39,144 nt of DNA from Hyphochytrium catenoides (GCA_900088475.1 FLMG01004490.1:1-39144); one strand, 5' to 3'. Counted from the first letter of the stretch, positions 2,960 to 36,205 are shown. A program made the numbers and translations. The notes: a model not told the origin generated them from the sequence alone.

Positions 2960-4160
2960 ATCACGTAGCACTTGTCGTCCCTTGAACCGTTACTCCACTG
3001 TTGCTCTAAGTTAGCCCCATATCCAGCAACATAGCTTCGTCCAATGACCATTGAGGTAGATTTCCGCATCATTGGACCAACTTAGTTCAATTACAAGCAG
3101 AATAACCCTAAGTTAGCCTAATGGTCATTATTCTAGCGTACCCTCCTGGCATAGAAGTAGCCTTACCCACTGTTGTCCTACGCTACTTCTTTCAATGGCT
3201 GTCTATTTAACTTCCAGTGATGGCATTTGGTGTAGCTTACCCCGACATTGCCCAAACCGATATCAATTCCCAATGATGTAGCTTCTGCTGGTACGAATGG
3301 ATGCAAATTGCTCCAATGATGGCCGANNNNNNNNNNNNNNNNNNNNNNNNNNNNNNNNNNNNNNNNNNNNNNNNNNNNNNNNNNNNNNNNNNNNNNNNNN
3401 NNNNNNNNNNNNNNNNNNNNNNNNNNNNNNNNNNNNNNNNNNNNNNNNNNNNNNNNNNATGACCATTGACGTAGCTTCGACCAATATCTGTCGATTTAGA
3501 TTAGCTCGTTGTTGGTCAAGGTTACCTCTGACTCATCAGTTTATTCTCTACAGAAGGTTGTGGGTGTAGCTTACGCCGATTATTGAGGGATATTATTCCA
3601 ACGACCATTGGCCTGCTATTCCCTAGCAGTTGTTGTCGTCACTTAGTCAAATGTTGGCAGTTGTTACCTTAATCGTCATTAGCCAAGCTTACTTTCAAGT
3701 AATTGCAGCAAGTTAACCTGTCGTTGAGCAAGTGTATCTCAAGACCAGTGATCTTCTAAATTGACGTAGCGAAGTCCCAATGGACATTGGGATACAGTAC
3801 TCCAATGTCGGGATAAGGTTTTATTCATGGTCAGCAGGACTAACATACGTTAATGTTGTTGAGCGATGTTAGTACAACGTTATTGTAATTTGGGCCCTTG
3901 TATGAGGGAATAGTCTACCTTGATAACCATCGTATAAACTTACACCAACATTGGGCTACTACAGTACTGTATTCTACCACTAGTTTGCGGAAGTAAGGCC
4001 AATGGTAATCGAAGAAAGGTCACCCAACATTGCGATAGCCTATCTCAACGTTGAGATTACTGCTTTTTCACTTTTGCAAATATTTCTGGTAGAAATGAAT
4101 TTTTTCAGGAGAAGAGCTTAGACCAACATTGGCGTAGCATACTACAATGTTCTCTAGAAT
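2960..4160. repeat. Degenerate AT-rich tandem array with units of about 22-25 bp; spans assembly gap 3327-3458
   Basis: Recurrent GTAGCTT/TAGC, ATGACCATTG and CCAACATTG motifs; no convincing ORF. Confidence 0.5.
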
Positions 4161-6695: not shown

Positions 6696-7568
6696 GGAGC
6701 TGGCACTCGATTCTCAAAGTCCTAAGCGGATGAGAAGCTAGGAGCAGCTGCCAGCTTCAATGCGCAGCAGCAGCTCCGAACGATGAGGCCCAAGGTCGCT
6801 CCTCCCCCTAGCTTAGTCTGGCTGCCTCCGATGACAAGAATCACCCCCCCGCCAGGTGTTCGCTTACAAGAGGAAAGGAGCAGATAGTTTTGGCGGCGGG
6901 CGGCCCGGGAAAGGAGTTCCCCCTTGGATGCGGCGCTAGGTGACACGCTTACCGCTGCTGGATCCTTGCGATCTGCTCAGCTTTCTCGCTCTGTGTCACT
7001 GAGGGTCTGCTGCTGCTGCTGCCTGCCTGCCTGCGTTCTATGCTGAGGTGAGCGGCCCGTGCAGGGTAGGGCAGGGAGGGTGTCGGTGCCTCAGAGAAAG
7101 AGGAGGGCGGGCATCGGATGTGAGGAATGAGGAAGGACTACTCGTAAACGGCAAAAGCAGCCCCCAACAATATCACTTCTGAACTCCCCCAGGACAGAGA
7201 AGCAGGTCTGAGGGGAGGTGTGGGAGGAAGAGGAAGAAGATCACTCTCTCTACCTACAGTGATCCCTCCTCATAGGCTCATAGGAGAGCAGAAGGAGAGG
7301 AGAGGCACGAGTGATCGGAGCTCGGCAGGAGGTCGGCAGGCCTGGCGGGCGGCAGCAGATAATGGGACGACATAGGCAGTGCGACCGGGATGACGGCGCT
7401 CTTCAACTGAAGGCAAGTCACGGCGGGCCGTCGGAAAGTGTCCACGGTGCCAGATCCAAAACCAAAGAGTGTCGGATTCGAGAGCCTCTGGACCAATGTA
7501 GAGCAGCCGCAGTGACTTGCGGATTACATCGACTACCGACTGAAAATTAGCACGCCTTGCTGCTGATC

Positions 7569-8712
7569 ATGGGAGCGGGTAACAAGAGACCACGACCAGA
7601 AGATCGTGCGCCGAAGCTGCCTGTCGATCGGCCGACCGCCGGGCTACGGAAGCAGCCTGCTTCGACTTTCCTCCAAGTGAGTCTCANNNNNNNNNNNNNN
7701 NNNNNNNNNNNNNNNNNNNNNNNNNNNNNNNNNNNNNNNNNNNNNNNCTGGACTTTGTCTCCATTGCCGCTGTGCGTGCGACAGGTAGAAGAGACTGTGC
7801 TTGGTCAGGCTGTGTTCAACGGCTTCCTAGACTCGCTGTTCAAGGTAACAGTCGCTTCTTTGGTCAGTCGCCGTTGGCTGGCCGGGGGCCTCCACTATGT
7901 GACGGCGCTCGACCTGCACCAGACGAAGATTACCGATGAAGTACTGCTCCATGTTGTCTGTCGACGATATCCGGCGCTCGAGACCTTGGATCTGCGGTGG
8001 TGCGATGGCCTGACGGGCGAGGGGTTGTCCTGTCTGGGCCAGCTCTCTAGCTTGAGAGTTTTAAACCTCAGGGGATGCACGGCCATATCTGATGGAGACC
8101 TTGCCGCTCTTGTTTGCTGTCCGCTTCAAGAGTTAGAGCTGACCGGTTGCCTGAAAGTAACAGATCGAGCACTGCGGGTGCTGAAAGAGATTCCGCAACT
8201 GGAGCGACTGCGGCTGTCGATGTGCCATCAGATAACGGATGGGGGACTTGCTCTCTTTCAGCGCTCGGCTTTAAAGGAACTGGAAGTCGCCTGCTGTGCC
8301 AGACTGACTGACAAGGCAATGGCCTCCATCGCCACCCTGTCACACCTGCAGTTCTTGGACATCAGCGGCTGTCGATTCATATCTGATCTCGGACTAGCCT
8401 TCCTTCGCCAAATCCNNNNNNNNNNNNNNNNNNNNNNNNNNNNNNNNNNNNNNNNNNNNNCGAGGGTCTCAGGCTTTGCGAGAGGAGTTTTTGAAGTCTC
8501 TGACAGCCCTGCCGAAGCTTCACACGCTAGATGTTTCCTGCTGCGAGCGCCTGACAATGGAGAGCCTGGAGAGGGCTCGAAAGCTGTTCCGCCCCGAGGT
8601 TGAGATCATCGACAGCTTTCCCCGCTTTCCACTAAAACCACTACTCGACACTGTCACGGATCAGCCCCAGGTTGAAGCAGGAGGAGCAGAAGCGGCCACA
8701 ACCTTGACTTGA
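7569..8712 (+). CDS. F-box/leucine-rich-repeat (FBXL, RNI-like) protein; intron about 7677-7784; two N gaps
   Basis: F-box-like FLQVEETVLGQAVFNGFL...LVSRRW, then Cys-containing LRRs (LETLDLRWCDGLT, LRVLNLRGCTAISD, LQFLDISGCRFISD, LHTLDVSCCERLT). The frame change falls in gap 8416-8460. Confidence 0.8.
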
Positions 8713-11970: not shown

Positions 11971-14029
11971 ATGACGCTGTTGATAGACGGCGTCCCGGAG
12001 GGTGGAGATGTCCTTCGCATCCTTGCGATAGTCCTGGCTCTTTATCTGCTCTATCATGCGAGTTGGACTTATCATGTCATCAGGACCCTGCCCAGAGATC
12101 TCAGGTAAGCTTAGTACCCGTCGATGCGCTGATGAGCCTTCGTTGGTCCTATCGTCATTGCCGTCCTAACCCCTGGGTGCGCCTTTCTTTGGCTCACCAT
12201 GGCGTTCCGCAGCGCCTTAATGACCTTCATCCATGTCACGGTCTCCATGAAACTCTTGGCGCGCCAGGGAAAAACAGTGCCGGAGCTCTTCGATGAGACG
12301 GCAGCCCGTCGGAAGGACGCGACCGCGATTATATTTGAAGATCAGCGCTGGACGTTCACGCAACTGCGGGATCGGACCAACGCCGTGGCGAACTACTTCA
12401 GCCGACAGGTAGCCCCTCCCTTGAGCTCTATGTTGGGAAGCCTCTAACAGCCTTGGGTACGTGTTGCAGGGCTATAAGAAAGGCGACGTCGTCTCGCTGT
12501 TTATGGACCAGCGCCCCGAGTTTATTGCCTTCTGGTTAGGCCTTGCAAAGCTGGGAGTCCAGGTTGCGCTGATCAACTTTAACCTCCGCGGCGCCCCTCT
12601 TCGGCACTGCATCAGCACTGTGAGCTCCAGAGCCATTATCGTCGGAAGCGAGCTCTCTTCTTACCTAAAGGAGGTGCAAGGAGAGCTTGAAGGTGTGGAG
12701 GAGGTCTTTATCTCTGGTGGAAAGCAGGAAGGGTACAGAGCTGTGGACGAGGTGCTGAGTGCCGAGAGCACAGCGCCTGACTATCCGCGACACCCTGGTG
12801 ATTTCCACGAGAAGCTGCTCTTTATCTTCACAAGTGGGACCACGGGCCTGCCCAAGGCCGCCATCGTCCGCAACGACCGGTTTTATTATCAGTTCAAAGC
12901 CATCAACGTCTTTTTCCGCATCCGCCCCGCGGACATTATCTACGTGACTCTGCCCATCTACCATAGCGCAGGCGGAGTGGTTGGCGTGGGCAACATGCTC
13001 CTGGCGGGGGCCACGATTGTCCTCAAGAAGAAATTCTCCGCCAGTAACTTCTTCAAGGACTGCACAGAGCACAAATGCACTGTCATCCAGTACATCGGAG
13101 AGATCGTGCGCTACCTCAACTCCACGGCGCCATCGCCGTACGATACAGCGCATAACGTGCGGGTGGCCATAGGGAATGGTCTCAATGGCAAGGTTTGGGC
13201 GGAGTTCCAGGAGCGCTTCCACATCCCACAAGTAGGAGAGTTCTATGGGGCGACGGAGGGCAACACAAGCATGGTAAACAGCGTCAACAGAACCGGCGCT
13301 TGCGGCTTCAACTCCATCTTCCTACCTTTCGTCTACCCAGTACGTACCGTGCGCTTTGACGTGGAAAATGAAGAGCTAATCCGCGATAAGAGGGGATTTT
13401 GCATTCCATGCCGTCCAGGTGAGATTGGAGAGCTTATCGGCTATGTCAACATGAAGAGCCCGCTTCGTAAGTACGATGGCTACGTAGGCCAAGAGCATAC
13501 ACAGAAGAAGATTGCACGGGACGTCTTTCGCAAGGGTGACATCTGGTTCCGCACTGGAGACCTGCTGATGATGGATGCAGACGGCTTCTACTATTTTAAG
13601 GACAGGATTGGGGACACTTTCAGGTGGAGGGGGGAGAATGTCTCGACTGCAGAAGTGGAGGAGGTCGTAGCCAGAGTTTTGAATAATAGCACACCTGTGG
13701 CCGTCTATGGCGTCCAAGTACCTGGCAGTGACGGCCGGGGCGGGATGTTGGCCATTGGCGGGGGTGAGGAGGAGCAAGTGGAGGGGTTGTACGAGAAGCT
13801 GAAGAGTCAGCTTCCTTCCTACGCCGTCCCACTCTTTATCCGGCTCCTGCAGTCGATGGAGACTACAGGGACTCACAAGATCGTCAAAACAACGCTGAAG
13901 CAGGAGGAGTTCCATCCCGCGCGTGTTGGCAAGGACCCGGTGCTGGTCCTGGACAGGAAAGAGGGCAAATACGTGCCTCTCGATGCCGCGCGGTACCAGC
14001 AGATTATGGCAGAGCAATGGAGGTTCTAG
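11971..14029 (+). CDS. FATP: Long-chain fatty acid transport protein / very-long-chain acyl-CoA synthetase (SLC27/FATP, FAT1 family); exons 11971-12104, 12213-12408, 12470-14029
   Basis: N-terminal TM then TLPRDL; AMP-binding FIFTSGTTGLPKAA; EFYGATEG; FATP motif DVFRKGDIWFRTGDLL...FKDRIGDTFRWRGENVSTAEVE. Confidence 0.95.
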
Positions 14030-14366
14030 CCTCTTAACGCACCAGAAGAGGTAGGAAGGGCTCTCTGCCTGAACTAGGAGTTGGCTTTCAAAAAGAGATG
14101 AAGGAGAGGAACAACGAGGAGAGAGGGAGACAGGAAAGGTAACGGCGTGCGAGCCAAGGAACTGAACATATTCTTATTATATAAAATGAGTTCGACGGGA
14201 TAGGGGAGCACGGTCTAGTGTAGCACTGTGTAGGCAGCCTCATCTGGAGGTCCAGAGCCAAATGCTAGTGCTATTCAAGGATCAGGGGCTGTCGCTAATG
14301 GAGAAAGAGACGGTGAAAAAGTGTTAGAGTGGTAGCGGAGAAGTCAGCGAGTCACTCGGTGTGGAT

Positions 14367-17300
14367 CTACGTGAAATAGTCGTTGAAGTTCAGTTGGCAG
14401 AGCGCCTCACTCAGGTACTGGGCGGCTTTGGTCCTGGCCATGGCTGTCAATATGATGATTACGTATCGATTCGCCTTCATAAACTCGTCTGCCGTGTCTT
14501 GAGCTAGTGCGAGGTGCCGTGAGCGCTCCTGCTCCGTCATTCTGAGACCTGAAGGTGAAAGTAACACCGAGATCGTGAGATAAGGCAGAAATGGAAAGAC
14601 TTTAAGGCAAGGGTGAACAGAATGGCATAGAGGACTCTAGGCAATCGGGAACTTGGCCGCAGATCATGCAGCAAGCACGAGAGGTTCAATGGTTTGGTTA
14701 GCGGACCTGACCTACCTTGACTGAGGTAGAGGGCAAGCTCCTGCCTAAACTTGATAGCAAGGTTCATCATGTCCCTGAGGTAGTGGAGCACCATCTTACT
14801 CCGCGGTACCAGGAAACAGCGCTCGAGAATAAGCTCTAGATACTCCTCATGGGCTCTCTTCAGGGCCTCCACTGTATCTGCTGCCTCTAATGCGGCCTCC
14901 AGTCGCTTCCAAGCGGTGTGAAGGACCTGGTTGAGCAGAAACGACTGCAACCCGCTGAGGAAGTGGAGAATTTGGCTTACTACGGCTAAGAGCCTATATC
15001 AGCAGGGCGAGACGAGATCTCAGTACAATAACAATGATTATCCGGAAGACGAGAACGTGAGATAGACACCACAGAGAGGAAGAGCAAAAGATGATCGGAA
15101 GGGCGCAGCTAGGTGGAATCTGGGAAAGGATTGTCCAGAGGGAAAGATCTACATGCCTGCGATGGGAAGGTGAAAGCACAAGCTTCTTCCTCGCCTCCAA
15201 GTGTAATTGATCGTACAGAGAGCGGACCCGCTTGACCTGCAGGAGGAGACGCATCGCGCTGTTATACTGCCGGAGAGACTCCTCGCTCAGGATCATCCTA
15301 AGAGGTCCTTCTACAACGTACTCAAACCGCAGCAGGGCCATGATGTTCACGTCTGAAGGGGGGCAGCGGGCGCCGGACTCTTCAACAGTGACTGAGAACC
15401 TATCAAACATCTGCCGGACGTGCTCGGGGTCCACCGAACGGTTGCGTTCCCTTTCAGCTAGACAGATGCTGCCATAGATTTGGCTGGTCAGTGTCTGAGA
15501 GAGAGAGGCACTCAACAGGTGATTCAGGACAAAGGAGTCCGCCCAAGAAACATCTCCGCTGTTAAGTCTGACGCAAACAAAGCGGACCAACGGCCCTAGC
15601 AACTCCTCGTCCGCCATGAAGAAAAATGACCGCATAGCTCTTAAGTGCGCTGCAAGCTGCAGACGGAGGAGGAACGAATCCCTCAGAGCTCTGTCTACTA
15701 GCTGGTAGTGATTCAGTACTGGTTGGCACAGCTGCTGGTCAAGCACGCGGGGCCATGAGGCCGTAGGGTCACCTAGCGCAGCCATCACACGGTCCGGCCA
15801 GCCTTCAAAAGTAAATAGCGTGTGATTGTCGGAACTGCCGCTTGAGAAGACGTGCCGCAGAAGATGCGCCTTCACCCCTACTTCATACAGGACCGGCGCG
15901 AGGTCAAGGAGGAAGGCTGGTATCGCCGCTTGATGTATGCCGAACTTGCTATCGCTCCTCCCTTCTTCAGCTGAGGTCAGAAGTGCGTCAACCTTGTGGA
16001 TGAATATCTCTCCATTGAGATCCAGTAACTCCCCTCTCCGGATCCAGGGTTCGAAGATCTGGAGGTAGCAGGCTAAAGACTCTGAGAACACAGCAGCAAG
16101 CCGCTGGGATGGTGAACGCAACCTCTCAGACCCCGTGAAGGTTTCTTGGGCTCCTTTCCCAGCTAAGGTCCTGTGAAGAGACGTAAGGAGAGTCGCAGTC
16201 TGAGTCCTGCAGCCGTGTCCGTCCGAATCCCCTGATGTTAGGACGTGGCACTCCATAGCGCTACGAGCCACCCTACTTAGGGCTGCGAAGGTGTCCAAGT
16301 CTTGCTCCAGCAGTGACAAGAGCTCCAGCACTGACATTTCCCCATCGGCACTCAAGTCCAGGAGCCGTTCCTCAAACTCCTCTACTAGACTGGACAATGC
16401 GCCACTCATTGCCCTCACGGTGGAGGAACCTCTGCCCTCATTAGCCAGCTCAGCACAGGAAAGTACAAAGTCTCTGCACGGCTGCAGATAGTTCGCCAAC
16501 TCCAAGAAGCGCTGGAGCACCTCAGAGCAAAGCGATGGCGAAAGTCCGGCGAAGGCGATCGCTCCAAGCTGCTCCTTCCTCTTGAACCAGCGATAACCTT
16601 GTGAAGCAGTATCTTCCTCAAAGATGACGGCCGGGAAACCTCGAAGAAGCCAGTGCAGAAGCTGTACCATCCGTACCTCTGGGAAGATCTTACAGGGCAA
16701 ACATAGGCCAAGGGACTGAGAGGGATCACTAAGAGGGCTGGCGGGACGAAGAGTCTCCTGCCAAAGCCGCCGCTCGTCTCCAAAGCCAAAGGAAAGCCCG
16801 GTCACCTCTTCAAGTGTCATTTGTTTTAGCTGTGCACTTAACTCTGGAAGGGTCGGGCTTGTCTCGACCTCCTCGTCATGTCCAGCAGCGCCATCTTGGC
16901 TGCGAGGCTCAATGGGAACAGGTAGATCCTCAACTGGCGGGTCCTCATGATCCGAGAGGCCCGAGTGCTCCCAAGTGGATGTGCTGTCTGAGCCGCAGCT
17001 GTCCTCCGACGATAGGTTCTGTTCCTCATCCAGAGCTTGTGGCTTCTCTTCAGCAATGAGCGTCCCATCGGTGAGCTCGAGCTCAAACTCGTCGAAGGGC
17101 TCCGAGAGCGATGTGGGCCGATCCGAAAGCAGGAGTAACAACCGGAGGATGTCCTAGAGGACCAAGACCGGTAAGAAAGGACGGTCATTGGCCACGAAGA
17201 GTAGTGATCTTGGCCCGAAGACACTGTTAACGCGGTGAAACTTACGTGTGCGAAGGGATCTTTGGGTCCGACCCGCTTCAATAAGACTTCCACCTTGGCC

Positions 17301-18843: not shown

Positions 18844-21800
18844 CTAGAAGAAATCCGCCGCGCGCTTGCGACTCCCCTTCGAACTGGTTCCGTTCACTGA
18901 GGGAGACGGAGTGCTGGCCTTTGACATGCCCTTTAAGTCCTTTCCCTTACTTTTTTTAAGCTCCGGTGTGCCGCTGTCACCTGAGCTGTACTTTAGCACT
19001 CCTTTCACCGGCGTAGCCTTCTCTCCGTCCAGAGAGGTTCTGGGAGACATTTTCAGCCGCTTGACAGAGGCAGTGTAGGCTGGACAGAAGAAGAAGAGAG
19101 GAGGAGAAAAATGCAGAGAGCAGAAGATAAAGAGGGGACAGGAGTCCAGTCAGGTCTTGAGAGTCCACGTTTGTCTCAGTGTCTGTGAGGCCTACCAAGC
19201 GCTTCATTCTTGTTGGAGAACTTGACTCGTTTGACGGCACTGCCCTTCAGAGGCTCCTGAGACGGCTTCTGAGAGGCTTTGGACGGCTTCTTAGCTGGGT
19301 TCTTCTTCATGGCAACTCGGCTGCAGTGCCGGCAATGGGTGGACGACGGTGGAATTAATCCTTTTCCCCAGCCTTTACAGCCCTGACACCGAGGGTAGCG
19401 CTGCTTCCCTTTCACCACTGGGAGACGGAGAAAGTTAGTGCTTGTGACAGAAGGTGTGCTTGTGATGACAAGAGCAAGAACGAGAGAGACAGCAGGGAAG
19501 GGGCCCTTACCGAACTCTATCGTAGACTTCGCAGTCTCCCCAGCGCTCTTTTCCTTCGTTGCTTGTTCCATCTTTGTTCCCTCGGTCTTATCCTTCAGAT
19601 TCAGCTTTCCTCCGCTCTTCTTCTTTGTCTTCTCAGCCTGCTGGTCCTGCTTAGCCTGCTGGGGGGCCTTGTTCAGTGTCTTAGCTTCTTTCTTAGCCTG
19701 CTCCTCCTTGCTCTTCTCGGATGTCAGCGTCTTAACCTTGCTTGTTTTTCCGTCTTTCTGCTTGCTCGCTATTGCCTGACTCTTCTTGCTTTCTTCTGCT
19801 TTTCCCTCCTTCTGGGCTTCTTTCTGTTTTTTGGACTCTGGTTTGCTATCTTTCGCGTCGGGCGCCGTCTTGCTCTCTTCTTTCTCAGTGCTATCCTTTC
19901 CTTGTTCCCTTTGAACTTCCACCTTCTGAGCCTTTGACTTCTTCTCCTTTTTCAAGGTAGTGCCCGTCTCGGGCCCAGCACCACTCTGCTGCTGCTTCTC
20001 TGTTTCAGACACTTCATCTACTAGCTTCCGCTTCTTGCCTTTCCCTGGCTTGTTGGCCTCAGCAGCACTTTTATCGGACGCTGTGGAGCCGTTTCCTTGT
20101 CCCGTCAGGCCAGTGTCCTTCTTCTCGTCGTGTTTCTCCGCCGTTCTGGGTTTCACTGCCTCTGCCTTGGTCTTTTTAGTTTTCTTCTTTGGAGGCTCTG
20201 TCACCTCCTCGGGCTGTTTACTTCCTTGAATTTCCTCCTCTTCTTGATCTCCCTTCGCCTCGGACGCGTCGGGCTGCGAAGTAACCTTCTTGCCTACCAG
20301 CTTTGCAAGCTTGAGCACCCTCGCCCGACACTTGTCCACGAGTCCTCTTCTCAATGGGAATGGTAAGATAGAGGAGAGTGAGGGCAAGATAATTCCATGT
20401 TAGTCCTTCTCGTCTTTCCGACGGCAAGGGAGAGAGCGCCACTCTTACTCTTGGGAGCCGAGCTCAATCAAATAGTCTCGCCAAACAGACAGATCCACGC
20501 GAGGGAAGCCGCTCTGGCTCGACCCTTCTTCTTCTTCTTTGTCGGTCTCGGGTTCACTCTCCTCTAAAGCCCCGAACTTGTACTTATCCAACATTCCCCT
20601 GGAAAATGAGAGAACCAAACGACAAGCGTCAGAAAGAAACGAGAATTGAAGAGAGGACAATCGTATCCGAGGGTGATCTTGAAAGATTGAGAGAAGAACA
20701 GAAAGAGAAATGGACGTAGATTGTTACCTTAGGACTTCATGTCCCACTCTTCGGTACACGACATCCTCTGTTGAGATGGCAATTGTGCGGGCAAAAGGAG
20801 CAAGAAGGGTCTTAAACGTCTCGGATCCGACCTGTGTACCAGACAAGAAGCGCTCATTAAAGGGTGTTGCCAACGAAACCAGTTAGAGAAATGCTCAGAG
20901 ACCAGCAGTGGCAAGGGCATGGGGCGACGAAGAGCGTGAGGGCGAGAGCTAAGCTCCCCTAGAGCCATACAAGAGTAAAGGCTACTAACTTATAGCTGTA
21001 CACCTTTTCTCTTACCTCTCTCCCTGCGGCGGACTCGAGCTCTGTCATGAAGATGTCGGCGATGTGGAAGCGAAGGCCATTGGGATCTGAATGCAGAGCC
21101 TCCTCATAGACGGAGGCAAATCTGTGCATTGTGAAAGGTTAGGCTCAGCAAATAGGAGAGCAAGAGACAGAAGAGATTCGAGAGAGAAGGAGAGACTGTC
21201 TGCAGCCCTACTCAACGCCATCGTCATTTGGAAGAGGCGAGACGCTAGCGAGGCGGCAATTGAATCTTGCACTATCACGATGTCGCGGACCAGCATTCCA
21301 GAGCTGGCCGGACTGACGTACGATAGTGCGGGAAAGCGGGCGAATGCTGATTGAGGAACAAACAGTCGAGGAGTAGAGTCAACTAGAGGCAAGATAGAGG
21401 GGCGCCACGGAGGGGAGAGGGAGACAGAGAGAGCAAGAACCTTTCGACCAGGTCTTTCTTCATCTCCTTGTTCTTGAGGTAGAGGAAAGCCTGATGGAAT
21501 GCCTTTCGAACCAAAGAATAGAACTTATCTAGCCTGCGGAAGGATAGAGAAACAGAAAGAGAGAGAGAGACCGCGCAAGATAGCGTTAGACGACAATCCA
21601 AAGGATGTACTCACTTCTAGAAGCAAGGTGTCAGCATTTACATAAGGAAGAAGGAGCCTGATAGTAAGATAGGCACATACAGAGCCAAGATGACGGACGA
21701 TAAGACAGGCAAATGTGTGTGTGAAAGAGAGAGAGAGAGAGAGGGAGAAGAGGCAAAGAGAGTTTAGAAAGCGCGAATACGTTTCCCTTACCGATGCTTA

Positions 21801-25681: not shown

Positions 25682-26512
25682 AGAAAGCCATCGAGATGCA
25701 TCGAGAGGCTCAGCCAATCACACACTCGGAAGGATCAGACAGCAGATTTCATTCACCTGGAGCTGCTGAGCCCGACCTCTTGCCATTGCCATGATCACCA
25801 TCTGAACCCACAGCGTCATGGCTGACGAGGGTGCTTCTTGGTTAACCGGAGTGCCCGCTACGTGGCCGGGATAGTGAAGGACGAGAGGTATAGGTGTTGA
25901 AACCTCCGAAGGTCCGCTAGAGAATTTGCAGACAGCGAGGTTAGGTGACACTTGTCTCTGCCGCTTACACTGGGCATAGCGCACATCAGATGATATTGAC
26001 TAATCTGGCTGTTATTGGCGTTGAGCATCAATGAGAGTTGCGAAGGAGCTGCAGCTGACCAGAAGGAAGAGTAAGGCATTTGACCAAGGATGTCAACTCA
26101 ATGAAAGCAGATATTCCCTGGAACATGTTCGTCCTCTGTCGATATTACGCATTGTTAATAAAGCCCGGTGCCTGCTGAGCAGATAGCGTGCGATAGAGGT
26201 ATGAAGACAGAGCTTCCTGTTCGACGAGCTAGTGCCATTCTCTGCATGTCAACAATCTAATAGTGGGTGAGACCCCCAGCCAAAGAAGAGTGGGAAGCAC
26301 TCTAACTAGGCTATGACTGCCATGATGCTTAACCTCTAGGGCCCAATCTTGGCAGGGAAGCTAGGCTAATATCTAGGCTATTATCGTACTCTCAATTCTA
26401 CGTTCGTCTATGGAGAGTTCGAGACAAAAATATGTAGAGAACGATGCTCAGTCGAAGAAGCACATGAGGATGGCTCTCTTAGAAAGACAAGCAGGGGAAA
26501 GGGGAAGCGCCC

Positions 26513-29500
26513 TTACAGTCCTGGGCCATCAATGCTGGCTACCGTTCCTTTCTTGGCGCTTGACTGCATTATGAAGGTCGTCGCCGCTTCCGTCCTCACA
26601 AACCTTTGAAAGGTGGGAAGCAGCAGACTGAGAACTTCCTTCTCCAGAACCTTGGCTGTCTCCTCAAGTTCCGTGCTACTCATCAGCACCTTGCCTCGGC
26701 CGCTATCCTTGCTCCGTATTACCTTCCTTAGGTCAGCAGAGATGTTGAGCTCACAAGGCGATTGCAAGGCAATGTACTTGATCACTATCTCCTTGAAGAT
26801 AAGAGCACGTTTCTCCGGCTGCTCTACCTCGAAAAAGCGAGACAGATCCTCCCAGGCCAAGAGGTTCTCCTCAGCCATTTGCTGCACGAGGAACTGTCGG
26901 AACTTGGTTTTGAGCAGCAGATCCGACACTAGCGCCTGCTTCAGCTGCTCACAGGTCGCAACAGAGGAGAGAAGCTCAAAGTTCCTAGGGTAGAGGAGAG
27001 AGAGAATGTCGGCATGTAGAGGAAGGAGGGAATGTTGGCATGAGACGCGTCCCAGCATAGCGGAATGGGAGACAAAATGAAAGAGAAAGAAACTCGTGGA
27101 AACCCGCAGGAGGGAAAAGGAGAGAACCCAAGCTCCTATGAACGCGGCGGTAATTAGGGAAAGAGGAATGAGAGGGCAGTCATACGAGGGAGGCTGGTTG
27201 AAAGGCATAGAAGATAAACTTACATATGATGCCGACTCTGCACGGCGTATGTCCCCGACCTTGACACCCTGCTGGCGATCAGCTTTGGCAGGAACCAGGC
27301 CAGCTGGAAGACCGTGATCTCAAGAAGGACTGCGTGCTGGAGAAAGATCTGAGGTCCCAGAGGGTACATGTCAATCGTCAGCCCCAGATAGAGCCTGATC
27401 GACTCAAAGCCAAAGAGAACTACGGCTGCCAGGCGGAACTGGCGGACGTGAGGCATATACCTCGCCAGGTCGCTGGTCTGGAAGAGCAGAAAGGCAAGTG
27501 AGGCGCCAAGAACTACCTTCCATATCGCCACAAAGTACGCCACACGCTGAGGCCGGAACCGAGTGGGCACCCCGACTATCCATTGACTCATAATGGTTAC
27601 CTCGGTCAAGGGTCTGGCGGCTGCGGGATCCTCTACAATATCAAAGAAAGAGCTTATGGCCGACGCAGCATAGATGAACGGAAGTCCCACGGCGATCGCG
27701 CGTTGCAGCTTCCTCATCTTTTTCAGAGAGTGCGGCGACCGCAATGCACTTTCATCTCCGCCCAGAAAGCCGAACTTAAGGATGGCAATGGGCGCAGAGA
27801 TTGTGCTGATTATCAGCGTGGCGAGGAGCCCATCGAGTATGAAGGCGTAGTCATATGGGTCCATCGCGGGAGGCACCCACAGGAAGAAGACGAGGCACGC
27901 TTGAGCTAGCAAGGAGCCCAACAGGATGGTTTGCGATGGGATGCCTGCTGCCATGAAAGCGTTCTCTCGGCGGTGACGGACCAAAGCTCCCAGCAGAAGA
28001 GCTGTGCTCAGGAAGGTGACAGCAAAGTGGCAGATGAGACCGCTTGAGTCGGCTGAGCCTAGGACTAAGTGGTTACACTCGATCGCGTTTGCAGGCAAAA
28101 GAGTTTGCCCATGGAGGCAGTGACTCTCTGGCTTCCAGTTGAACGTCACAAGTAGACTCTGCTCGTCTGTGACGCACTGTGACCCCAGCGTGGGCTGCAT
28201 ATCTGACAGTTGGCAGAGCGGCTCGGGCTCTAAGACGGAGTATTGTCCTACCCGGATCTTTCTCAACAGCTTGCGGCTCAGCTCTTGGGCTTCAGCTGTG
28301 GGCGGGATTGCGATGTCGAGGTCCGTGTTCAGGGCCCACTTGGCAAAAGAAGCATACACAAACGCAAGAGAGTGGTAATCTTCCTGCCAGTGTCTCCGTA
28401 TCGCGATATTGAAGGCTGAGGCTATGGGCCAGCAGCCAGCTTCCTCATAGACTGGGCTGACGGGCTTGAAGATCAGCCCGGTTGCCCCTTCAAGGGGCTT
28501 GTTGTCCTCGTCCTCTGACACTGAGTCATACAGCTTTGCTCCTGGAATGCCCGCCTGACAGGCCTTCAACTGAAGAGATGAGCTGGACAGCGGTCCTCTC
28601 CCCCGGGTGCTTTCGCCGTTATCGCTGCTGGGGACAGGCAGAAGCAGGTCCAGCGTGCTCTGGAAGATCTCAGGAGAGGTCCACACCAGCCCCAGCCCGC
28701 CAACCGTGGACGTGACTGCGGCAGTCACTAACTCATCTCGAACCATTGCACGGATATTGGTGCTGCCCTCAAGGAGGCGGGTTGTGAGGCCGTTGCAGTC
28801 ATGGAAAAAGCCAGAGTCCACAGCGTCAAGAACCGTGCAGACTGTCTGGGCTAAGAGAGTGCGTGGACCGTCAAGATAGAGTTGAATAGATACTGAGGGT
28901 AGGCTAGCACTTGGGTTCAGAGCCTGAATTTTCCCGTCATTCCACTACCATATCGTGCCCTTTAGAATCTCTCCTAGCACCTCCAGAGAAACATTGAGCC
29001 GAGCGACTCCTTGCAAGTTGAATATCAAAGACACGGGAAGTGTGAAGAGAGGCAAGAGCACGTGATCCTGGAAGCCCGCGGAGGCTAAAGAGAAGCTCTG
29101 GCTGGCAAAAATGGACAAATTGCTTGCCATTCCTAAGCCTATATCCTCGATCAACGGACCAGACCTGAGGTTCGAGCCCGCTTCCTTATTAAAGCCATCA
29201 TAGTAAGAGGCCAGGAAGGTATCGAGGAAGAGTCCTGGCAGCCCAACGACTGGCCCCAAGTCCTTCTTAGCCAATTGCACTAGAGAGCAAGCATCCACCG
29301 AGCAGTCTGTGACTCGATCTGTACCAAGATTACTGGGGGCACAAAGGATCTTTGTCTGTACGTCTGCGTCGATAAAGCTTCGAAAGTATTCAGTGAGCGT
29401 TGAGAAGCCCGTCGCCCTAGCGATGTCACTGAACTGTTGGCTGGTCAGCGCCCAGTGAATCCATTCCAGCATGGCCTGCCGCTCATGGCAGGTGTTCATG

Positions 29501-30734
29501 GTGACGTTGGTTCTAAAAATAAGATAGGAAATGGAGATGATAGGCCAGCCGCCGCTGGCACTGGTGTCGATAACAGGGGCCCTCCAATGTTCGTCGAACT
29601 GGGCCTCAACCCAGACCAGTGAGGCCATGACGGAGTCTGACGAGGCTACGACAGGTGTCCCAGCTCTGTTCATGAGACGAGCGACTGGCAGATGATAAGT
29701 GGAAGCTTCACTGAGAACAACATAGCCGATGCTGTAGGGCGTGCTTTGCACCTGGAGGCAGCAGGTGATGAGTCGAGTAAGTCTTCACTGTCCCTTGTTG
29801 TTTCTTCCGTCTCCTCCTCATCAAACAAAAAGCTTAACTTACCGTCACTGCAACGCCTGCCGTCCCCTTCGCCTCGTAGTATCGCCAAGTCCAGCCCTGG
29901 CCATCCCTGCAGGTCACCTCATTGAACGTCCCCGTGCCTGCCAGGCGGCTAGCGTTTGCTTCTGGACCGCACCATCGAGGCTGCTGAGACGAGGGCACTC
30001 GCTGGCTGAAGACTGTATCAAAGGATCCGAGCGCTGATGTCATGACTTGAGACGTTCCTGAGGAGTCCTGTCTCACGACCAGGGTGATGGGATAATCGAT
30101 AGGCTCCAAGCCTGGGTTCAGGGCTTTTATCTCAGGATCATTCCACCTGCAGAAGAAAGGAGAACAAAAGCCGAACCCATACTAAGAGACTGCAGACCCG
30201 CCGCCGAAAGGAAAGGAACCGAGCACTAGCAACGCGAGCAGCTTCTTCCACTTACCACGTGATAGCGCCCCTGAAGATACGAGCCAACACCTCGCGAGAT
30301 AGGAGGAGATCCTTTACACCTGGCAGATTGAATACTGGCACCACGGCTGAGAGACAGAGGGGAACCTGCATTAGGTCCGTGTAGGTGGCAAAGTCACTGC
30401 TATCTAGCGGAGCATCTACCACACCAAAAGCTGAGAGATTCGAAAGGAGCTTGGTCTTCCCAGCCCCAGATCCCACGGGATCATAGTTAATGCGTGTTGG
30501 GATCTCCCCAGCTGAAGTGCTGGAGGTGAACTGATGGTATAGGCGGTTAACTCGTCTCAGGAGATCTGTGGGAAGCGTGCCTCCCGCCACGTAGAGAGAC
30601 ACAGGGGGAGGATTCTGAGGGCTTCCATCAGCCTCTCCTGTGCTTAGGGTTAAACCGGAGCTCCTAGTAGGAAGCCAGAGTGAAGAGCTCATGAAGAGGA
30701 GACATGGGAGGATCCTGAGACAGATATTTCGCAT
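26513..30734 (-). CDS. PstS-PstS-7TM(class C-like)-RGS receptor; exons 30734-30256, 30146-29843, 29751-27224, 26984-26513; one in-frame TAG at 28947-28945
   Basis: Signal peptide; PstS motifs AGGTLP, YDPVGSGAG, FGVVD, GAITWWNDPEIKALNP, VRQDSSGT, IGYV and GGWPIISISY; second repeat GTIW*WNDGKIQALNP; seven hydrophobic helices ending WFLPK; RGS motifs FRQFLVQQMAEENLLAW, YIALQSPCELNIS and FQRFVRT. Exon lengths total 3783 nt, which is 1261 codons including the terminal stop. Confidence 0.85.
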
Positions 30735-32806
30735 CTTGCTTAGGAGTATAGTTTGCTCCTCGCTGAGTGTAAGAAGACGACGCTTGCCCCGCTTCTTCCC
30801 GTCTTAGACCTCATACAAAAGCGCTATCATGATGACTAGGGGACAAGTGATGTTGGAGACGGAGAGGTAAGAATGATGACGAAAGACTTGCAGGGCCACT
30901 GTCTCCCGCTGACGCTGCTGCACAACTAGGCGAGTATCTTGTTTGTTGCTGCTCTGATGGCTGCGGTGGTCTTCCATTACGGCTACGCACGCAGGTGCAA
31001 ATCTTAGACTAAAGAAGAATGTTCTGAAGTAGTGGAGAGGAGGCCAGGAGAAGAAGAGGTCGGCCCTCGCTCTCCTCGTCAGTGATCTTAGTAACACGGC
31101 TGCTCGCTGATCGAGCGCAAGATTCTCTTGGGTAGAGTTTCTATTATTGATCCTTTGGAGGAGCCTGCCGCAGGAGAGAGAGACGAGCAGCATCCCTTCC
31201 CTGGGTTGGGACAGACTTCGATAGCATGGAACAGAGGAGCCAGATTGTCGCTGCCCAGCGCGATCCGTAACCGCTGTGATGGTGAGGCTAGCAGCTGCTG
31301 GTTATCTGGGAGGAAGTAGATTCCTTCTCTTTGCCTTCCTTCCTCTTAATCCCCTTGCCACTGTGCTGCCAAGGACTTATGTGTCTACTTTCCTGGGAGG
31401 GACAGACTGGTCTTCACTCTTCTCTCATCATCTCCCTTTCTCATTCTTCCTTCTTCTCACTCTATTCGGTGATGGCAACAGTGATGGAAGGCGAATCATA
31501 TGTATAAATAGCATAACCTCAAGTTTCTCAGAGCCAAAAGAGAGCTGCTCGTAGTAGTGGAGAGAAAACGATGCAGTTGGTGGCACTCAACACCTTCTCT
31601 GTTCTCCTCTTGCTCATCCTTCCCTCTTGCAGAAAGAGGCTTATTCACTAAGCTACCGCTGCTTTGGCAATGGTGGCCGCTGGTGAGCGTGGGCCCGTAA
31701 CTGCCCAATAAGACGAACAACCAGGAGGTGGCGGAGGTGACCTACGAACAGATGAAGAGAAGGAAGGACATGCCTCCTCCGGGGACCTGCTCTCTGCTGC
31801 TGGTGCTCAGCTCTTCTCTCGTGCGTTCAGAAGATGATAGGAAAGGTTGGTTGGCATCATCTCCTCCTCGGTCGGAGGAGGAGGTGACTGGAGGCGACAG
31901 GCAGGAAGCAAGCTGAGTAGATTCCTTCTCCTCTCATTGTCTTGCCTTTGCCTAGCTCGGCTGGAGGAGTGCACCAGGAGGGGACTGGACCAGGAAAGCC
32001 AAGTGAGAAGGAGGGGGAACGGAGGGGGGAGGAGAGAGAGAGGAACGGAGGCATCGAGGAGGAAAGGTGAAGAGAAGAGGAAGACAGAGAAACCGTTGGC
32101 CTAGGTTTATCCAGTGATCAGAGCGCGCGAGACACGATGATAGACGAGGAGTGGGAGGAGGGGGAAGAGCAGCGAGCTGCAGCGATTATGTGTCCGTTAC
32201 AAGGGGAGGGGGAACTCTGGCTCTCGCTCTGTCTTCTCTTCCTGTGCTATTCAGCGAGACAGAGTCACAGAGAGACAAAGCCCCTAGGAAGAAATGACAG
32301 GAAGTAAGAGAGACAGAGATTTAAAAACTAACTACTGCCCCGCCCCACCCCTGGGTAAGTGGCTCTACCCCCGAGGCCTCCCCCTGATGGAGGAGTGAGA
32401 AGCCTCCATAAAGCTGATCGTGGATCAGAAGAGCTTCCCTTGTGAAGAACCTGCACTTCTAGACGAGCGAGCACTTTGCATCATCATCGGCCCCCGCCTT
32501 CTTCTTCCTTGATTGTCGAGATCATGCTGCTGTACGCACACACACATCGCGCGCCACGATTGACGCTGTACAAGCCAAAGGATCTTCTTCTTGTTGATGA
32601 GGTGAGGAGGAGGACGGAGACGAAGACCGGCCACACCTCTCTTACTTGTTCTATCAACTACTATGAGATTGATCATCAGCATAGTAAACGATAGTTCTTC
32701 TATCTCCACCTACGACCGGCAACTCCTGACAAACAGAGCCTGGTATTCAGAGCTGCGGTCTGCGAAAACCTTCCTAGAACAGACGTACTTTAGTAGTAGA
32801 AAAACA

Positions 32807-35800
32807 ATGCAAAAGCCGTCTCCATCTTCAACTTCATCATCATCATCATCAGAGCCGTCTGATGTCGTTGTTAATGTAGTTTGTCCGCCAATATTACCTG
32901 TTGTAGATAGCGGTTAGCGGTACCTTCATCCGATAGTTCCAGAGTGCAGTTGTTGGCTTGGCATCTGCATCTTCAGTCTTCAGGCCGCATCTTCAGGCAG
33001 CAGGTGGCGGCGTGGGCGGAGCAGAGACAGGAGAGGATGCGGCGGCGGTGGGTCCTGGCAGGGAGCAGAGGCCCAATAGGGACCCTGCGCTGCTAGAGGA
33101 GGAGAGACAAGGCTTCCAAGAGGACGTTACTACCAGCACTCCAAGGTAGCTCACAAAGGCACAGGCGTTAGGCAGCAGCGTGTGGCCTCAAGCAGAGGCT
33201 TCGCCGCGGCCTGACAGCCCGCCGCATCTGGTCCACTATCATCATCATTGAGATGGTTCTGCTCAGTATCTTTTAACTTATAGTGTTCGCTGCCTGACAC
33301 AAAGGGAAGAAGGACTTCCTTAGCTCTCCATCCAGTTGCTGACTCCCTCCTCCTCCTTTGCAAAAACGTTGGGCAGCGCCTCGTTCCTACTCTGTCTTTT
33401 CTTTCCCTCTCCTGCCTCCTGGACTACTTGTGCCGCCCTACCTACTCACTAGTGAGGACGATGGGAGGGCTACGACCTTTGGACGAAAGAAAGAAAGCGA
33501 AGACCTGCGCTGGCGGTCGTCGCCTAACGTATTTCTTGGAGGAGAAAGGCTCACAAGAAGGAGGAGCATCAAGTGGGAGGTTAACTCCTTCTTTGCCCCC
33601 AGCCAGCTTTCGAGTCCTCACAGACCGCTTCCTCCTGCCATAAATCAACTCTTTCCAGCGGCGACACAGAACCTTTACTGCGTGGCGGCCGCTGGACGGC
33701 AAGACTGCGATAAGCAATGGTCACTTCTCTCTCATTAAGGAGAAGCACCGCCTAGAAAGCGACGAACGGTTTGTTTTCACCTCTTCTGCAGCCAAAAGAG
33801 CAGTAGAGACGGGAAATGAAGAGCTTGTCAAGTGGCTGCATACGCACGCTCGACACTCTAGAGTGTGTTCTCTCACGATGCCAGCAGGGGAAGGACACCA
33901 GGAGCCCCGGTATAAGATCTCTTGGATGGTCGCTCTCTGCTGCAAGGATGTCAATGATCGTGAGATGACACGAGCCTTCGAGCACTGCTCTCTGGAGCTT
34001 GTCCAGTGGCTTTGTGCCAACGGCCACACCAATCCCTTAGCGGGCGATGAAGATCTAATGCAGGACCCGTCCACTCTCTACGTCATGCTGAGGTTCAAAG
34101 ATCTTGACGTTGCCAAATGGCTTGTTCAGGGAAATAAGACAGCTTTGGAAAGATTGAGCAACTGGGGGAGAGACTGTTCTAGGACGCTGCGTATTGAACA
34201 GCTAGGTCTCAAAGGCGTGAAGTGGTTCAGGCAGACTACTGGAGAGTACTGCCAACTTAGCGACAGCCAATTGCACTATCTCGTGACACACAAGTCCGAT
34301 GGTCCTGCTGCAGCTCGCTGGCTGCAGGGGCAGAAAGTCAGTCCGCACCGTCCTGCGTACGATGAAGCTTCCACTTAACGAATTTCCCTTGTGGTGCCTC
34401 CAGCAGACGGCATATAGCTCCATTGTTCGAGAGGAGTTGGGCATGGTTGTGGCCAACGCTATCGCCTACGGAGAGGTGACGCTCCTAGATTACCTGGCAG
34501 AACAGGTTTGTTGTTGGACACCGGATATTGCAGAGGTGGTGGAAGAAGCCATAGTACACGGTCAGTCCTCTGTTCTTGAATGGGCCTTGAATAGGACGCA
34601 AAGCGAGATCTCTAGCCTAGTGCCTCGTCCTCATCCTGGTCCTTCCTTGCAATGCTGCTCTAAGAAGCGAGCCTTTCTACGGTTACTGAACGACAGGGCA
34701 CCTGCTCTGTACTCGCACTACGTACCTGCGGCAGTGCGAGACAGCTTTGAATATACGGAGACGACTATTCGCATGTTAGCTGAGGCAATTGAAAATGGGC
34801 AAGCGGACGTCCTTCGGGGATTTACCCTATCCTGGAAGCGAGTCATGGAACCTCAGACGGTGCAGGAGGACCTGTCTCGTGCGGTAGGGGTAGCGATGGA
34901 GCGAGGAAACATAGAAAGTGTAGAGGTCCTCTTCAAGAAAGAGCCGTGGATCTCATGTCGTTCCTGGGCTCGTACGATGGTTCAATCTGCGGAGAAAGCC
35001 ATAACAAGTGGCCCAAAGCAGATGATTCACCTCTTGCAATCCTTCAAAAAGGGTAGGGACTGCCTCGAGCAAGTGTTGAGATCCGTCATTAGATCTACAA
35101 CGGCCGAGAGCTATAATCCCTTGCGGGCGGCTCTCTCCCTCGATCCTGATCTTCTCAGTCCAATTCTGGACTCTGGTGCTATGGAATCACTCTGTTTCTC
35201 TGGACAACTGTCCAAGCTACAGCTTGTTCTGTCGGCAAACTCAGTAATGCAGATACCTGTCACGCCCGACGCAGTTCTTATCGCAGATAAGCGAGGCGAT
35301 AAGCCGATGATGGAGCTACTCTTGGCTAACTGTCGCGCGTGGATCTTTCCCCCCCACGTTCGTGGGTCCTCCCAACCAAATACGCCTATCTTTCTCAGCT
35401 AGTACAAATGGGAGAGGGGAGCGGTATGGATGAGGATGAGGACGAGAGTTACGTGATGGGCTACCTTGGATATGAGCCGGACCTTGAAGACTTATATCCA
35501 GCGGTTGAGTGTGAACAAGTGGAGATGCTACAATTGTTCTACTGTTGGATTGGCAAAGATACTTTGCCAGTTCACCTACTGTCGCATGCCATAGAATCTC
35601 ACGCTTGGAAGTCAGCACAGTGGATTGCCGCTTCTTCTCCTACCACCTGCCACCAGTTCATTGCGATCTTCGTAGGCATCTTGCAAACCGCCCAGCTCTA
35701 CATCCAGGAATACGAAGAGGCTCTTGCTGGTGCCCTGGGCCCTGGGTGGCTAGAGGAAGTACAAGAGGTGATCAGAACCCGCGAGAATGTAGGATCCTCA

Positions 35801-36205
35801 GATTTTTTGCCTCAGTCGGCGGTAGGACCCTATGTTCGTCGTGTATCTGGTGAGAAAGATGAAAAAATGGCAGAGTTGTTGACTCTGGTGGATAGTATGA
35901 GCGGTTTGTCCGTCTACAGGCTTCCAGCCGATGATAAGGAGGAAGTAGAAGAGGAAAGATGTCACTGGGTCTGGGAAAATAGAAGTATCAAGTCTCACCC
36001 GCTGCCTTGCTCACCGCGCTGGAGAGGACCTACGAGGAGTGGAGTTGGCGCCAACAGAGGAGGGACCCTTGGCCGGAAGATCAGGACTAAAAATCGAAAG
36101 ACCATTCTCTTACTCCGTGATTGTTTGCTTTGTGAGATAGCAGTCCTAGTCGATAACCTCTTCGTATGGCAGCTGATCAAACAAAGGGAAATACACATTG
36201 GCTGA
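32807..36205 (+). CDS. Multi-exon ankyrin-repeat-like protein; 5' and 3' exon structure uncertain
   Basis: Degenerate ankyrin repeats TAISNGHFSLIK, AVETGNEELVKWLH, AIAYGEVTLLDYL, AIVHGQSSVLEW, AMERGNIESVEVL and ADKRGDKPMMELLL. ORF frame changes coincide with GT-AG intron candidates at about 33580-33658, 34337-34406 and 35362-35402. Confidence 0.6.

Follow-up and report, generated by a model that had tools for sequence, protein, structure and literature searches.

A four-exon gene of Hyphochytrium catenoides combines tandem PstS-type domains, seven membrane helices and a predicted RGS box, and carries an in-frame stop codon in the sequenced strain

Receptors and G-protein regulators resembling the two halves of the gene discussed here have been described separately. 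Receptors that join a PBP_like_2 ectodomain to a 7tm_3 membrane domain are published for Spizellomyces (SPPG_06488; PMC3251606) and for Plasmodiophora brassicae (the 7tm3-PBP proteins; PMC4815078). Proteins in which seven transmembrane helices (7TM) accompany a regulator of G-protein signalling (RGS) box are widespread (PMC3971589, PMC3386157), and 7TM RGS1-4 of Naegleria fowleri carry large ectodomains (PMC9283941). In animals, the class C orphan receptors GPR158 and GPR179 act with RGS7-G-beta-5 (PMC8611064, PMC3373406). Here, we analyze a locus in a stretch of 39,144 nt of the genome record of Hyphochytrium catenoides (the window), located at positions 26,513-30,734 on the minus strand. The locus is a real four-exon eukaryotic gene and its predicted product would unite both designs in a single chain. 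Both halves are already known, and the three-part combination appears to be undescribed. On balance, we favor reading the locus as one selectively maintained gene for a receptor and GTPase-activating protein (GAP), with a nonsense allele of very recent origin in the strain that was sequenced.

The predicted protein shares features with each of these groups. As in AtRGS1 (PMC3386157) and Naegleria 7TM RGS1-4, seven transmembrane helices would be followed by a cytoplasmic RGS box, and by analogy the protein might be a membrane GAP set by an extracellular cue. A large ectodomain is shared with the Naegleria members. Those ectodomains consist of EGF, lectin or GPS modules, whereas here a small-molecule binding protein, in which a ligand pocket can be identified, takes their place. 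AtRGS1, in contrast, is almost without an ectodomain. The predicted RGS box distinguishes the locus from the Spizellomyces and Plasmodiophora receptors, for which none is reported (PMC3251606, PMC4815078). Like GPR158 and GPR179, the protein would use a class C type core without a Venus flytrap to bring an RGS domain to the membrane and to end G-alpha signaling. The RGS protein of GPR158 and GPR179 is however separate and recruited non-covalently, while here it would reside in the same polypeptide, below a PstS-type ectodomain. A first-pass annotation of the window had stated that class C receptors normally use a type I Venus-flytrap domain and that 7TM-RGS proteins have no large ectodomain. 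Both statements are outdated, given the published type II ectodomains including PBP_like_2 (PMC3251606, PMC4815078) and the Naegleria proteins (PMC9283941). The annotation's impression that the three-part architecture was new holds so far. No description of the fusion was found in the full-text literature on these architecture terms, and none was present among the Atlas neighbors, which carry no RGS, or among the retrieved proteins.

Searches recovered very few relatives of the protein. An exhaustive phmmer search with a 533-aa open reading frame (ORF) of the locus against 1.8 billion representatives returned one match, P0001 (E 5.5e-7). P0001 has a full-length relative, P0002, an uninterrupted JGI metagenome protein of 1028 aa that carries PF00003 and PF12849. 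When P0001 and P0002 served as queries in word-index searches, only these two proteins came up, and metagenome scans with a single protein and with an alignment (A1) confirmed no relative. P0002 has the same tandem PstS ectodomain, the same cysteine insertion in the first PstS domain and the same EPEPLC...C...C...C linker, followed by seven transmembrane helices. Unlike the predicted protein, P0002 ends after the membrane domain and has no RGS match.

The gene model joins five minus-strand ORFs (30252-30734, 29834-30109, 28945-29751, 27220-28821 and 26513-27208) into four exons (30734-30256, 30146-29843, 29751-27224 and 26984-26513). The joined frame has 3783 nt, or 1260 codons and a TAA, with a TAG at codon 530 as sole internal stop. 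The three introns of 109, 91 and 239 nt all have the form GTAAGT...YAG. The first-pass annotation was correct on every countable point of this model, including the five ORFs, the three canonical introns, the single TAG and the 1260-codon frame. Exons and introns are as follows, in order of transcription:

30256..30734, minus strand: exon 1, encoding the signal peptide and the PstS-1 N-lobe; ends in phase 2 (after TG)
30147..30255, minus strand: intron 1, 109 nt, GTAAGT...TGCAG
29843..30146, minus strand: exon 2, encoding the PstS-1 hinge and the phosphate-clamp motif WNDPEIKALNPG...VVRQDSSGTS, then a Cys-containing insertion
29752..29842, minus strand: intron 2, 91 nt, GTAAGT...TCCAG
27224..29751, minus strand: exon 3, the longest, encoding the PstS-1 C-lobe, PstS-2, the four-Cys linker and the 7TM; ends in phase 2 (after AT)
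26985..27223, minus strand: predicted intron 3, 239 nt, GTAAGT...CCCTAG
26513..26984, minus strand: exon 4, encoding a linker, the RGS box, a short tail and the TAA stop (26513-26515)

The start ATG lies at 30734. By inspection, an in-frame TAA occurs 24 codons upstream, with no earlier ATG after that TAA. Exon 1 encodes the signal peptide, with hydrophobic residues 4-22. An alignment of the spliced model (with X at the TAG) to P0002 is collinear over 826 columns at 29% identity (E 9e-75), and spans residues 45-834 of the model and 2-735 of P0002. No gap occurs where intron 1 (GAITWWNDPEI against GQITEWNDPSI) or intron 2 (GVAVTVQSTPYSIGYV against GVGLGVHMEPYGIGYV) is removed, nor at the TAG site (KGTIWXWNDG against VGYVKKWDDS). 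Gapless homology to a contiguous protein at all three points validates both introns as well as the placement of the TAG. The same two introns are supported independently, because exons 1-3 tile the PstS model TIGR00975. An alternative AC/GT donor for intron 1 was rejected, as the length given by the TG/GT donor matches P0002 and TIGR00975 without a gap. Intron 3, which would join the 7TM to the RGS box, is a prediction from sequence features. Its body is 72% pyrimidine and its GTAAGT donor is identical to those of introns 1 and 2. If left unspliced, the 7TM frame would end at a TAA created at the donor (AT/GTAA). By inspection, of all AGs in the 239 nt the acceptor alone leaves the RGS box in frame.

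The ectodomain consists of two PstS domains and a cysteine-bearing linker:

29356..30602, minus strand: PstS-1 domain, residues 45-393, spanning introns 1 and 2
28240..29262, minus strand: PstS-2 domain, about residues 425-765, an internal repeat of PstS-1
28060..28227, minus strand: four-Cys linker (C774, C787, C806, C820; EPEPLC...C...C...C) between PstS-2 and the first transmembrane helix (TM1)

Exons 1, 2 and 3 match TIGR00975 at model positions 4-110, 112-161 and 186-312 of 315 (E 2.4e-18, 4.5e-9 and 2.1e-19). The pieces of PstS-1 total approximately 172 bits against an equivalog cut-off of 205 bits, and by its sequence PstS-1 is a member of the PstS family and not an equivalog. The product also matches Pfam PBP_like_2 (E 2.4e-9), and exon 1 matches PstS structures in the PDB (E 2.5e-8). 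Alignment to solved PstS structures shows that PstS-1 keeps Ser38 (S89) and Asp56 (D107), as well as Arg135 (R185), Asp137 (D187), Ser139 (S189), Gly140 (G190) and Thr141 (T191). The equivalents of Thr10 and Phe11, T53 and L54, were read by inspection of the AGGTLP motif and not aligned by a tool. PstS-1 hence conserves in sequence every phosphate ligand position of E. coli PstS, with Thr10 assigned by inspection. Phosphate is a reasonable guess for the ligand of the predicted pocket, because all phosphate ligands are retained. The domain resembles bacterial PstS (E. coli 1IXH, Yersinia 2Z22 and M. tuberculosis PstS-1 1PC3) in covering TIGR00975 from 4 to 312 of 315 and in its full phosphate clamp. 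Unlike the bacterial proteins, it is joined in tandem with a receptor core instead of serving PstCAB as a free periplasmic protein, it contains an inserted eukaryote-specific Cys loop and it is encoded by a spliced nuclear gene.

The second PstS domain is recognizable from internal similarity to PstS-1 (BLASTP, E 5e-13) and is collinear with its counterpart in P0002. At the positions equivalent to Asp56, Arg135 and the SGT motif, it has Ser, Asp and TLL, respectively. PstS-2 is therefore degenerate in sequence and has probably lost anion binding. The first-pass annotation had proposed two PstS domains and both are present, with the ligand set intact in the first and degenerate in the second. 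The Cys-bearing insertion in PstS-1 is common to P0001 and P0002, and all four linker cysteines align with both proteins. These shared features place the ectodomain in an already established family of eukaryotic receptors, not among recent imports from bacteria. The Pfam scan gave no match to ANF_receptor or to the cysteine-rich domain NCD3G, and in place of a type I Venus flytrap the ectodomain has two type II PstS domains and the four-Cys linker.

Downstream of the linker, hydropathy places the membrane domain:

27277..28035, minus strand: seven-helix membrane domain, residues 834-1086

Seven hydrophobic segments lie between these residues. Counted over the loops, 15 Lys/Arg residues fall on the cytoplasmic side and 4 outside, consistent with the positive-inside rule. 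This topology puts the C-terminus inside, hence the RGS box would be cytosolic. When the transmembrane region alone was the query of an Atlas language-model search, the best clusters scored 0.90-0.91 and shared 186-189 features with it. Among the top three, two are annotated with 7tm_3, and the 7tm_3 set accounts for 44 of the 100 nearest clusters (0.90, 186-188 features). Another 17 of the 100 belong to an unannotated set that includes the top match (0.91, 189 features). The first RGS-bearing cluster appears at rank 48 with a score of 0.76. The seventh helix reads FLPKLI, which we take to be a class C-like PK (PKxY-type) motif. The ectodomain homologs all carry 7tm_3, and Atlas neighbors bear PF00003 together with PF12849.

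The C-terminal domain would lie beyond a linker of approximately 38 residues that follows the seventh helix:

26594..26926, minus strand: RGS box, residues 1124-1234

The match to Pfam RGS (PF00615) reaches 42.5 bits against a gathering cut-off of 23.9 bits (E 9.8e-11, profile positions 7-110 of 117). Matches to RGS structures in the PDB number 26, including RGS3, RGS5, RGS2 and RGS4. An Atlas search with the RGS region scored 0.92 with 198 shared features. The motifs AEEN and ELN correspond to SEEN and EVN of RGS3, RGS5 and RGS2, and both asparagines that contact G-alpha are retained. We take these to be Asn88 and Asn128 in RGS4 numbering. By inspection, the equivalent of RGS4 Asp163 is apparently Pro. 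The RGS identity is unambiguous at the sequence level, and GAP activity on G-alpha is predicted. The order given in the first-pass annotation, from the signal peptide through PstS-1, PstS-2, the Cys linker and seven transmembrane segments to RGS, is thus present in the gene model. The annotation had named fewer than seven helices or a missing RGS hit as refuting its reading, and both seven segments and an RGS match were seen.

The joined frame is interrupted by one internal stop:

28945..28947, minus strand: in-frame TAG, codon 530, in the motif KGTIW-stop-WNDGKIQALNP within PstS-2

The sequenced allele as it stands encodes a truncated product. The TAG fills a true residue position, which is Trp (TGG) in PstS-1 and Lys in P0002. 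The same position is presumably Lys in E. coli PstS, in an IKKWDD motif. Contig 4 of DNA run X1 (28270-30900) spans the TAG unchanged, and all 17 differences of the contig are placed elsewhere. Contig 8 of run X2 also spans the site with no change listed there, and X2 is slightly less certain as one of its six differences is unplaced. The TAG is genuine in the DNA of two runs. The neighboring conserved gene for a gamma-tubulin complex component (GCP) ends in ...NDYFT-TAG, and several long ORFs also end at TAG. Since the conserved GCP gene terminates at TAG, the codon is an ordinary stop here. We rejected TAG as a genome-wide sense codon, as the other TAG joining two long open segments occurs only antisense to the FATP gene of the window, and GCP ends at TAG. 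A mini-intron removing the stop was likewise rejected. By inspection, the 39-nt in-frame GT...AG option would delete the conserved WNDGKIQALNP, and its length is also far below the 91-239 nt of the introns of this gene.

A genuine stop could suggest two products, namely a secreted PstS protein of 529 residues ending at the TAG and an independent 7TM-RGS protein started downstream. The TAG however cuts PstS-2 in the middle of a hinge motif, and homology joins its two flanks into a single domain. A product started at the next ATG (residue 597) would have no signal peptide, and approximately 240 ectodomain residues with four conserved Cys would still need export. We consider two products very improbable.

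Alternatively, the TAG might be decoded and the full-length receptor made, either through read-through or through adenosine-to-inosine editing of the mRNA, which would convert UAG to UGG (Trp). Restorative editing of UAG to UGG is documented in fungi, specifically in filamentous ascomycetes (PMC11156358, PMC10776026). In favor of decoding, the paralogous PstS-1 motif encodes Trp (TGG) at this real residue position, and purifying selection acts on the frame downstream of the TAG even though every haplotype seen bears the TAG. Restorative editing is known only from some fungi though, and fungal editing favors hairpin loops. No hairpin was found either surrounding the TAG or following it (z +1.2 and +2.8), and no tRNA gene was found within the window. 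TAG is also the normal stop of the neighboring genes. UAG followed by U is not known to be a leaky context, which further counts against decoding. Overall, we regard production of the receptor by decoding as rather unlikely. The term read-through used in the first-pass annotation is unproven, considering an ordinary stop with no stimulatory RNA structure that is present in contigs of both DNA runs. A stronger version holds that the TAG is no defect at all. Decoding as Trp, by editing or efficient read-through, would be part of a wider habit of the genome, and the full-length protein would be an active G-alpha GAP gated by extracellular phosphate. We think this quite unlikely. If true, a decoded TAG would make this the first receptor to tie a dedicated phosphate-binding pocket directly to the shut-off of heterotrimeric G proteins.

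Variation among reads points to a gene that is still constrained. All sequencing runs found to contain the locus are of DNA, and we compared runs X1, X2 and X4 over positions 26300-30900 of the window. At least two haplotypes occur there, approximately 0.6% apart. X1 is nearly uniform for one of them, and X2 contigs break at haplotype differences. Coding differences number 33, with 20 synonymous and 13 non-synonymous (ratio of non-synonymous to synonymous polymorphism, pN/pS, 0.21; binomial p 1e-5). Downstream of the TAG, 15 synonymous differences compare with 11 non-synonymous ones (p 3e-4), and the differences in the RGS exon are five synonymous and none non-synonymous. Insertions and deletions (indels) are confined to introns and the 3' untranslated region (UTR), with none in exons. 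Intron 1 has five single-nucleotide polymorphisms and a 3-nt deletion in run X1, intron 2 has four single-base indels in an X2 contig, and the remaining indel (X4) lies just past the stop codon in the 3' UTR. This distribution lends the gene model further support. The gene is otherwise intact and under purifying selection. Because everything apart from the TAG is intact and constrained, a very recent loss of function is most likely. The TAG lies in the longest difference-free tract, of approximately 820 nt, and the simplest reading is that a nonsense mutation arose recently and was spread by recombination or gene conversion. In the soil metagenome X4, fragments at least 95% identical to the locus were found, with three X1 variants in common. 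This similarity suggests that soil is a habitat of the organism or of a close relative.

Several observations weigh against a single maintained receptor-GAP gene with a recent nonsense allele. The TAG would truncate the protein inside PstS-2. Every haplotype seen carries it while differing elsewhere under constraint, which is slightly awkward for a dead allele, and spread of the TAG by recombination or gene conversion would ease this. The presence of 7TM and RGS in one polypeptide depends on the predicted intron 3, and protein and metagenome searches found no second organism with a PstS-7TM-RGS architecture. AlphaFold2 run without an alignment gave a predicted local distance difference test (pLDDT) of 38.8 for a 573-aa piece and of 45.5 for the RGS exon, and hence no structural support. 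For the membrane domain, the only Pfam family matched is 7tm_3, over profile positions 10-251 of 251, and the score of 15.6 bits (E 0.013) falls below the gathering cut-off of 33.5 bits. Comparison by hhalign with the 7TM of P0001 and P0002 detected no similarity (probability 0.3%). The TM3-ECL2 cysteine pair of class C, between the third helix and the second extracellular loop, is absent, as C835 and C880 are the only cysteines of the membrane domain and neither is located at the top of TM3 or in ECL2. P0001 and P0002 both have this pair. The 7TM here is too divergent to align with theirs. The sequence supports a class C assignment only weakly. The class-C-like 7TM of the first-pass annotation stands as far as the seven helices and the sole Pfam family are concerned, and falters on the cut-off and the missing cysteines. 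Among the domain matches expected by that annotation, PBP_like_2 and RGS were recovered firmly and 7tm_3 only at E 0.013.

The divergence of the membrane domain raises the prospect that the 7TM-RGS half was recruited by exon or gene shuffling from a 7TM-RGS gene resident in the genome, with the PstS-PstS-Cys ectodomain grafted on. Homology to P0002 ends exactly where TM1 begins, and the lack of an hhalign match between the two 7TMs, the subthreshold 7tm_3 score and the missing class C disulfide likewise favor such a graft. The nearly complete coverage of 7tm_3 as the only matching family, the Atlas neighborhood in which RGS-bearing clusters first appear at rank 48 and the PK motif of TM7 (by inspection) speak against recruitment. 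In addition, no 7TM-RGS protein was among the matches of the 533-aa ORF in the exhaustive phmmer search, which hence gave no similarity of the 7TM to known ones. We consider such a graft distinctly doubtful. Our preferred reading is descent from the eukaryotic PstS-PstS-class C receptor family, in which an RGS box would have been gained at the C-terminus.

Intron 3, expression, ligand, GAP activity and the logic of coupling are what we infer for the receptor-GAP gene. The intact protein would consist of a signal peptide, PstS-1 with an intact clamp, a degenerate PstS-2, the four-Cys linker, a divergent 7TM derived from class C and a cytoplasmic RGS box. Phosphate or a similar oxyanion would close PstS-1, and closure might be relayed via PstS-2 and the Cys linker to the 7TM. 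A change in the 7TM could then alter how the tethered RGS box meets G-alpha-GTP. Two modes of action are conceivable. By analogy to plant AtRGS1, the ligand might relieve a membrane GAP. Alternatively, the RGS box could serve within the receptor to end the G-protein activation that the receptor itself sets off.

Other features of the window were recorded alongside the locus. An ORF of 522 aa at 12461-14029 (plus strand) encodes a FATP/SLC27-type AMP-binding enzyme whose best matches are animal FATP1/4, at approximately 50% identity. This ORF has no identical self match in a collection of 5.8 billion proteins, hence the proteins of this genome are seemingly absent there. The GCP gene at 14300-17153 (minus strand) carries GCP_N and GCP_C and, towards the 3' end, two or more pyrimidine-rich introns, with a last exon ending in ...LNFNDYFT followed by TAG. 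An ORF of 348 aa at 7557-8603 (plus strand) consists of LRR_6-type leucine-rich repeats. Strong AT skew (-0.34) extends over 19001-20400, across a 403-aa minus-strand ORF (19176-20387) with no Pfam match. Two overlapping plus-strand ORFs of 367 and 288 aa at 34299-36205 have no Pfam match either. The fraction of G and C is 0.37 at 3001-4000 and approximately 0.52 in the rest of the window.

How eukaryotes sense external phosphate is still poorly understood. In this regard, the premature stop of the sequenced strain lessens the value of the locus. A complete PstS with an intact clamp, a 7TM and a predicted G-alpha GAP in one chain nevertheless make a concrete candidate for phosphate-to-G-protein signaling. 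The gene would also be a natural case of a class-C-like receptor carrying its own RGS domain, an arrangement that animals achieve non-covalently with GPR158 and RGS7.

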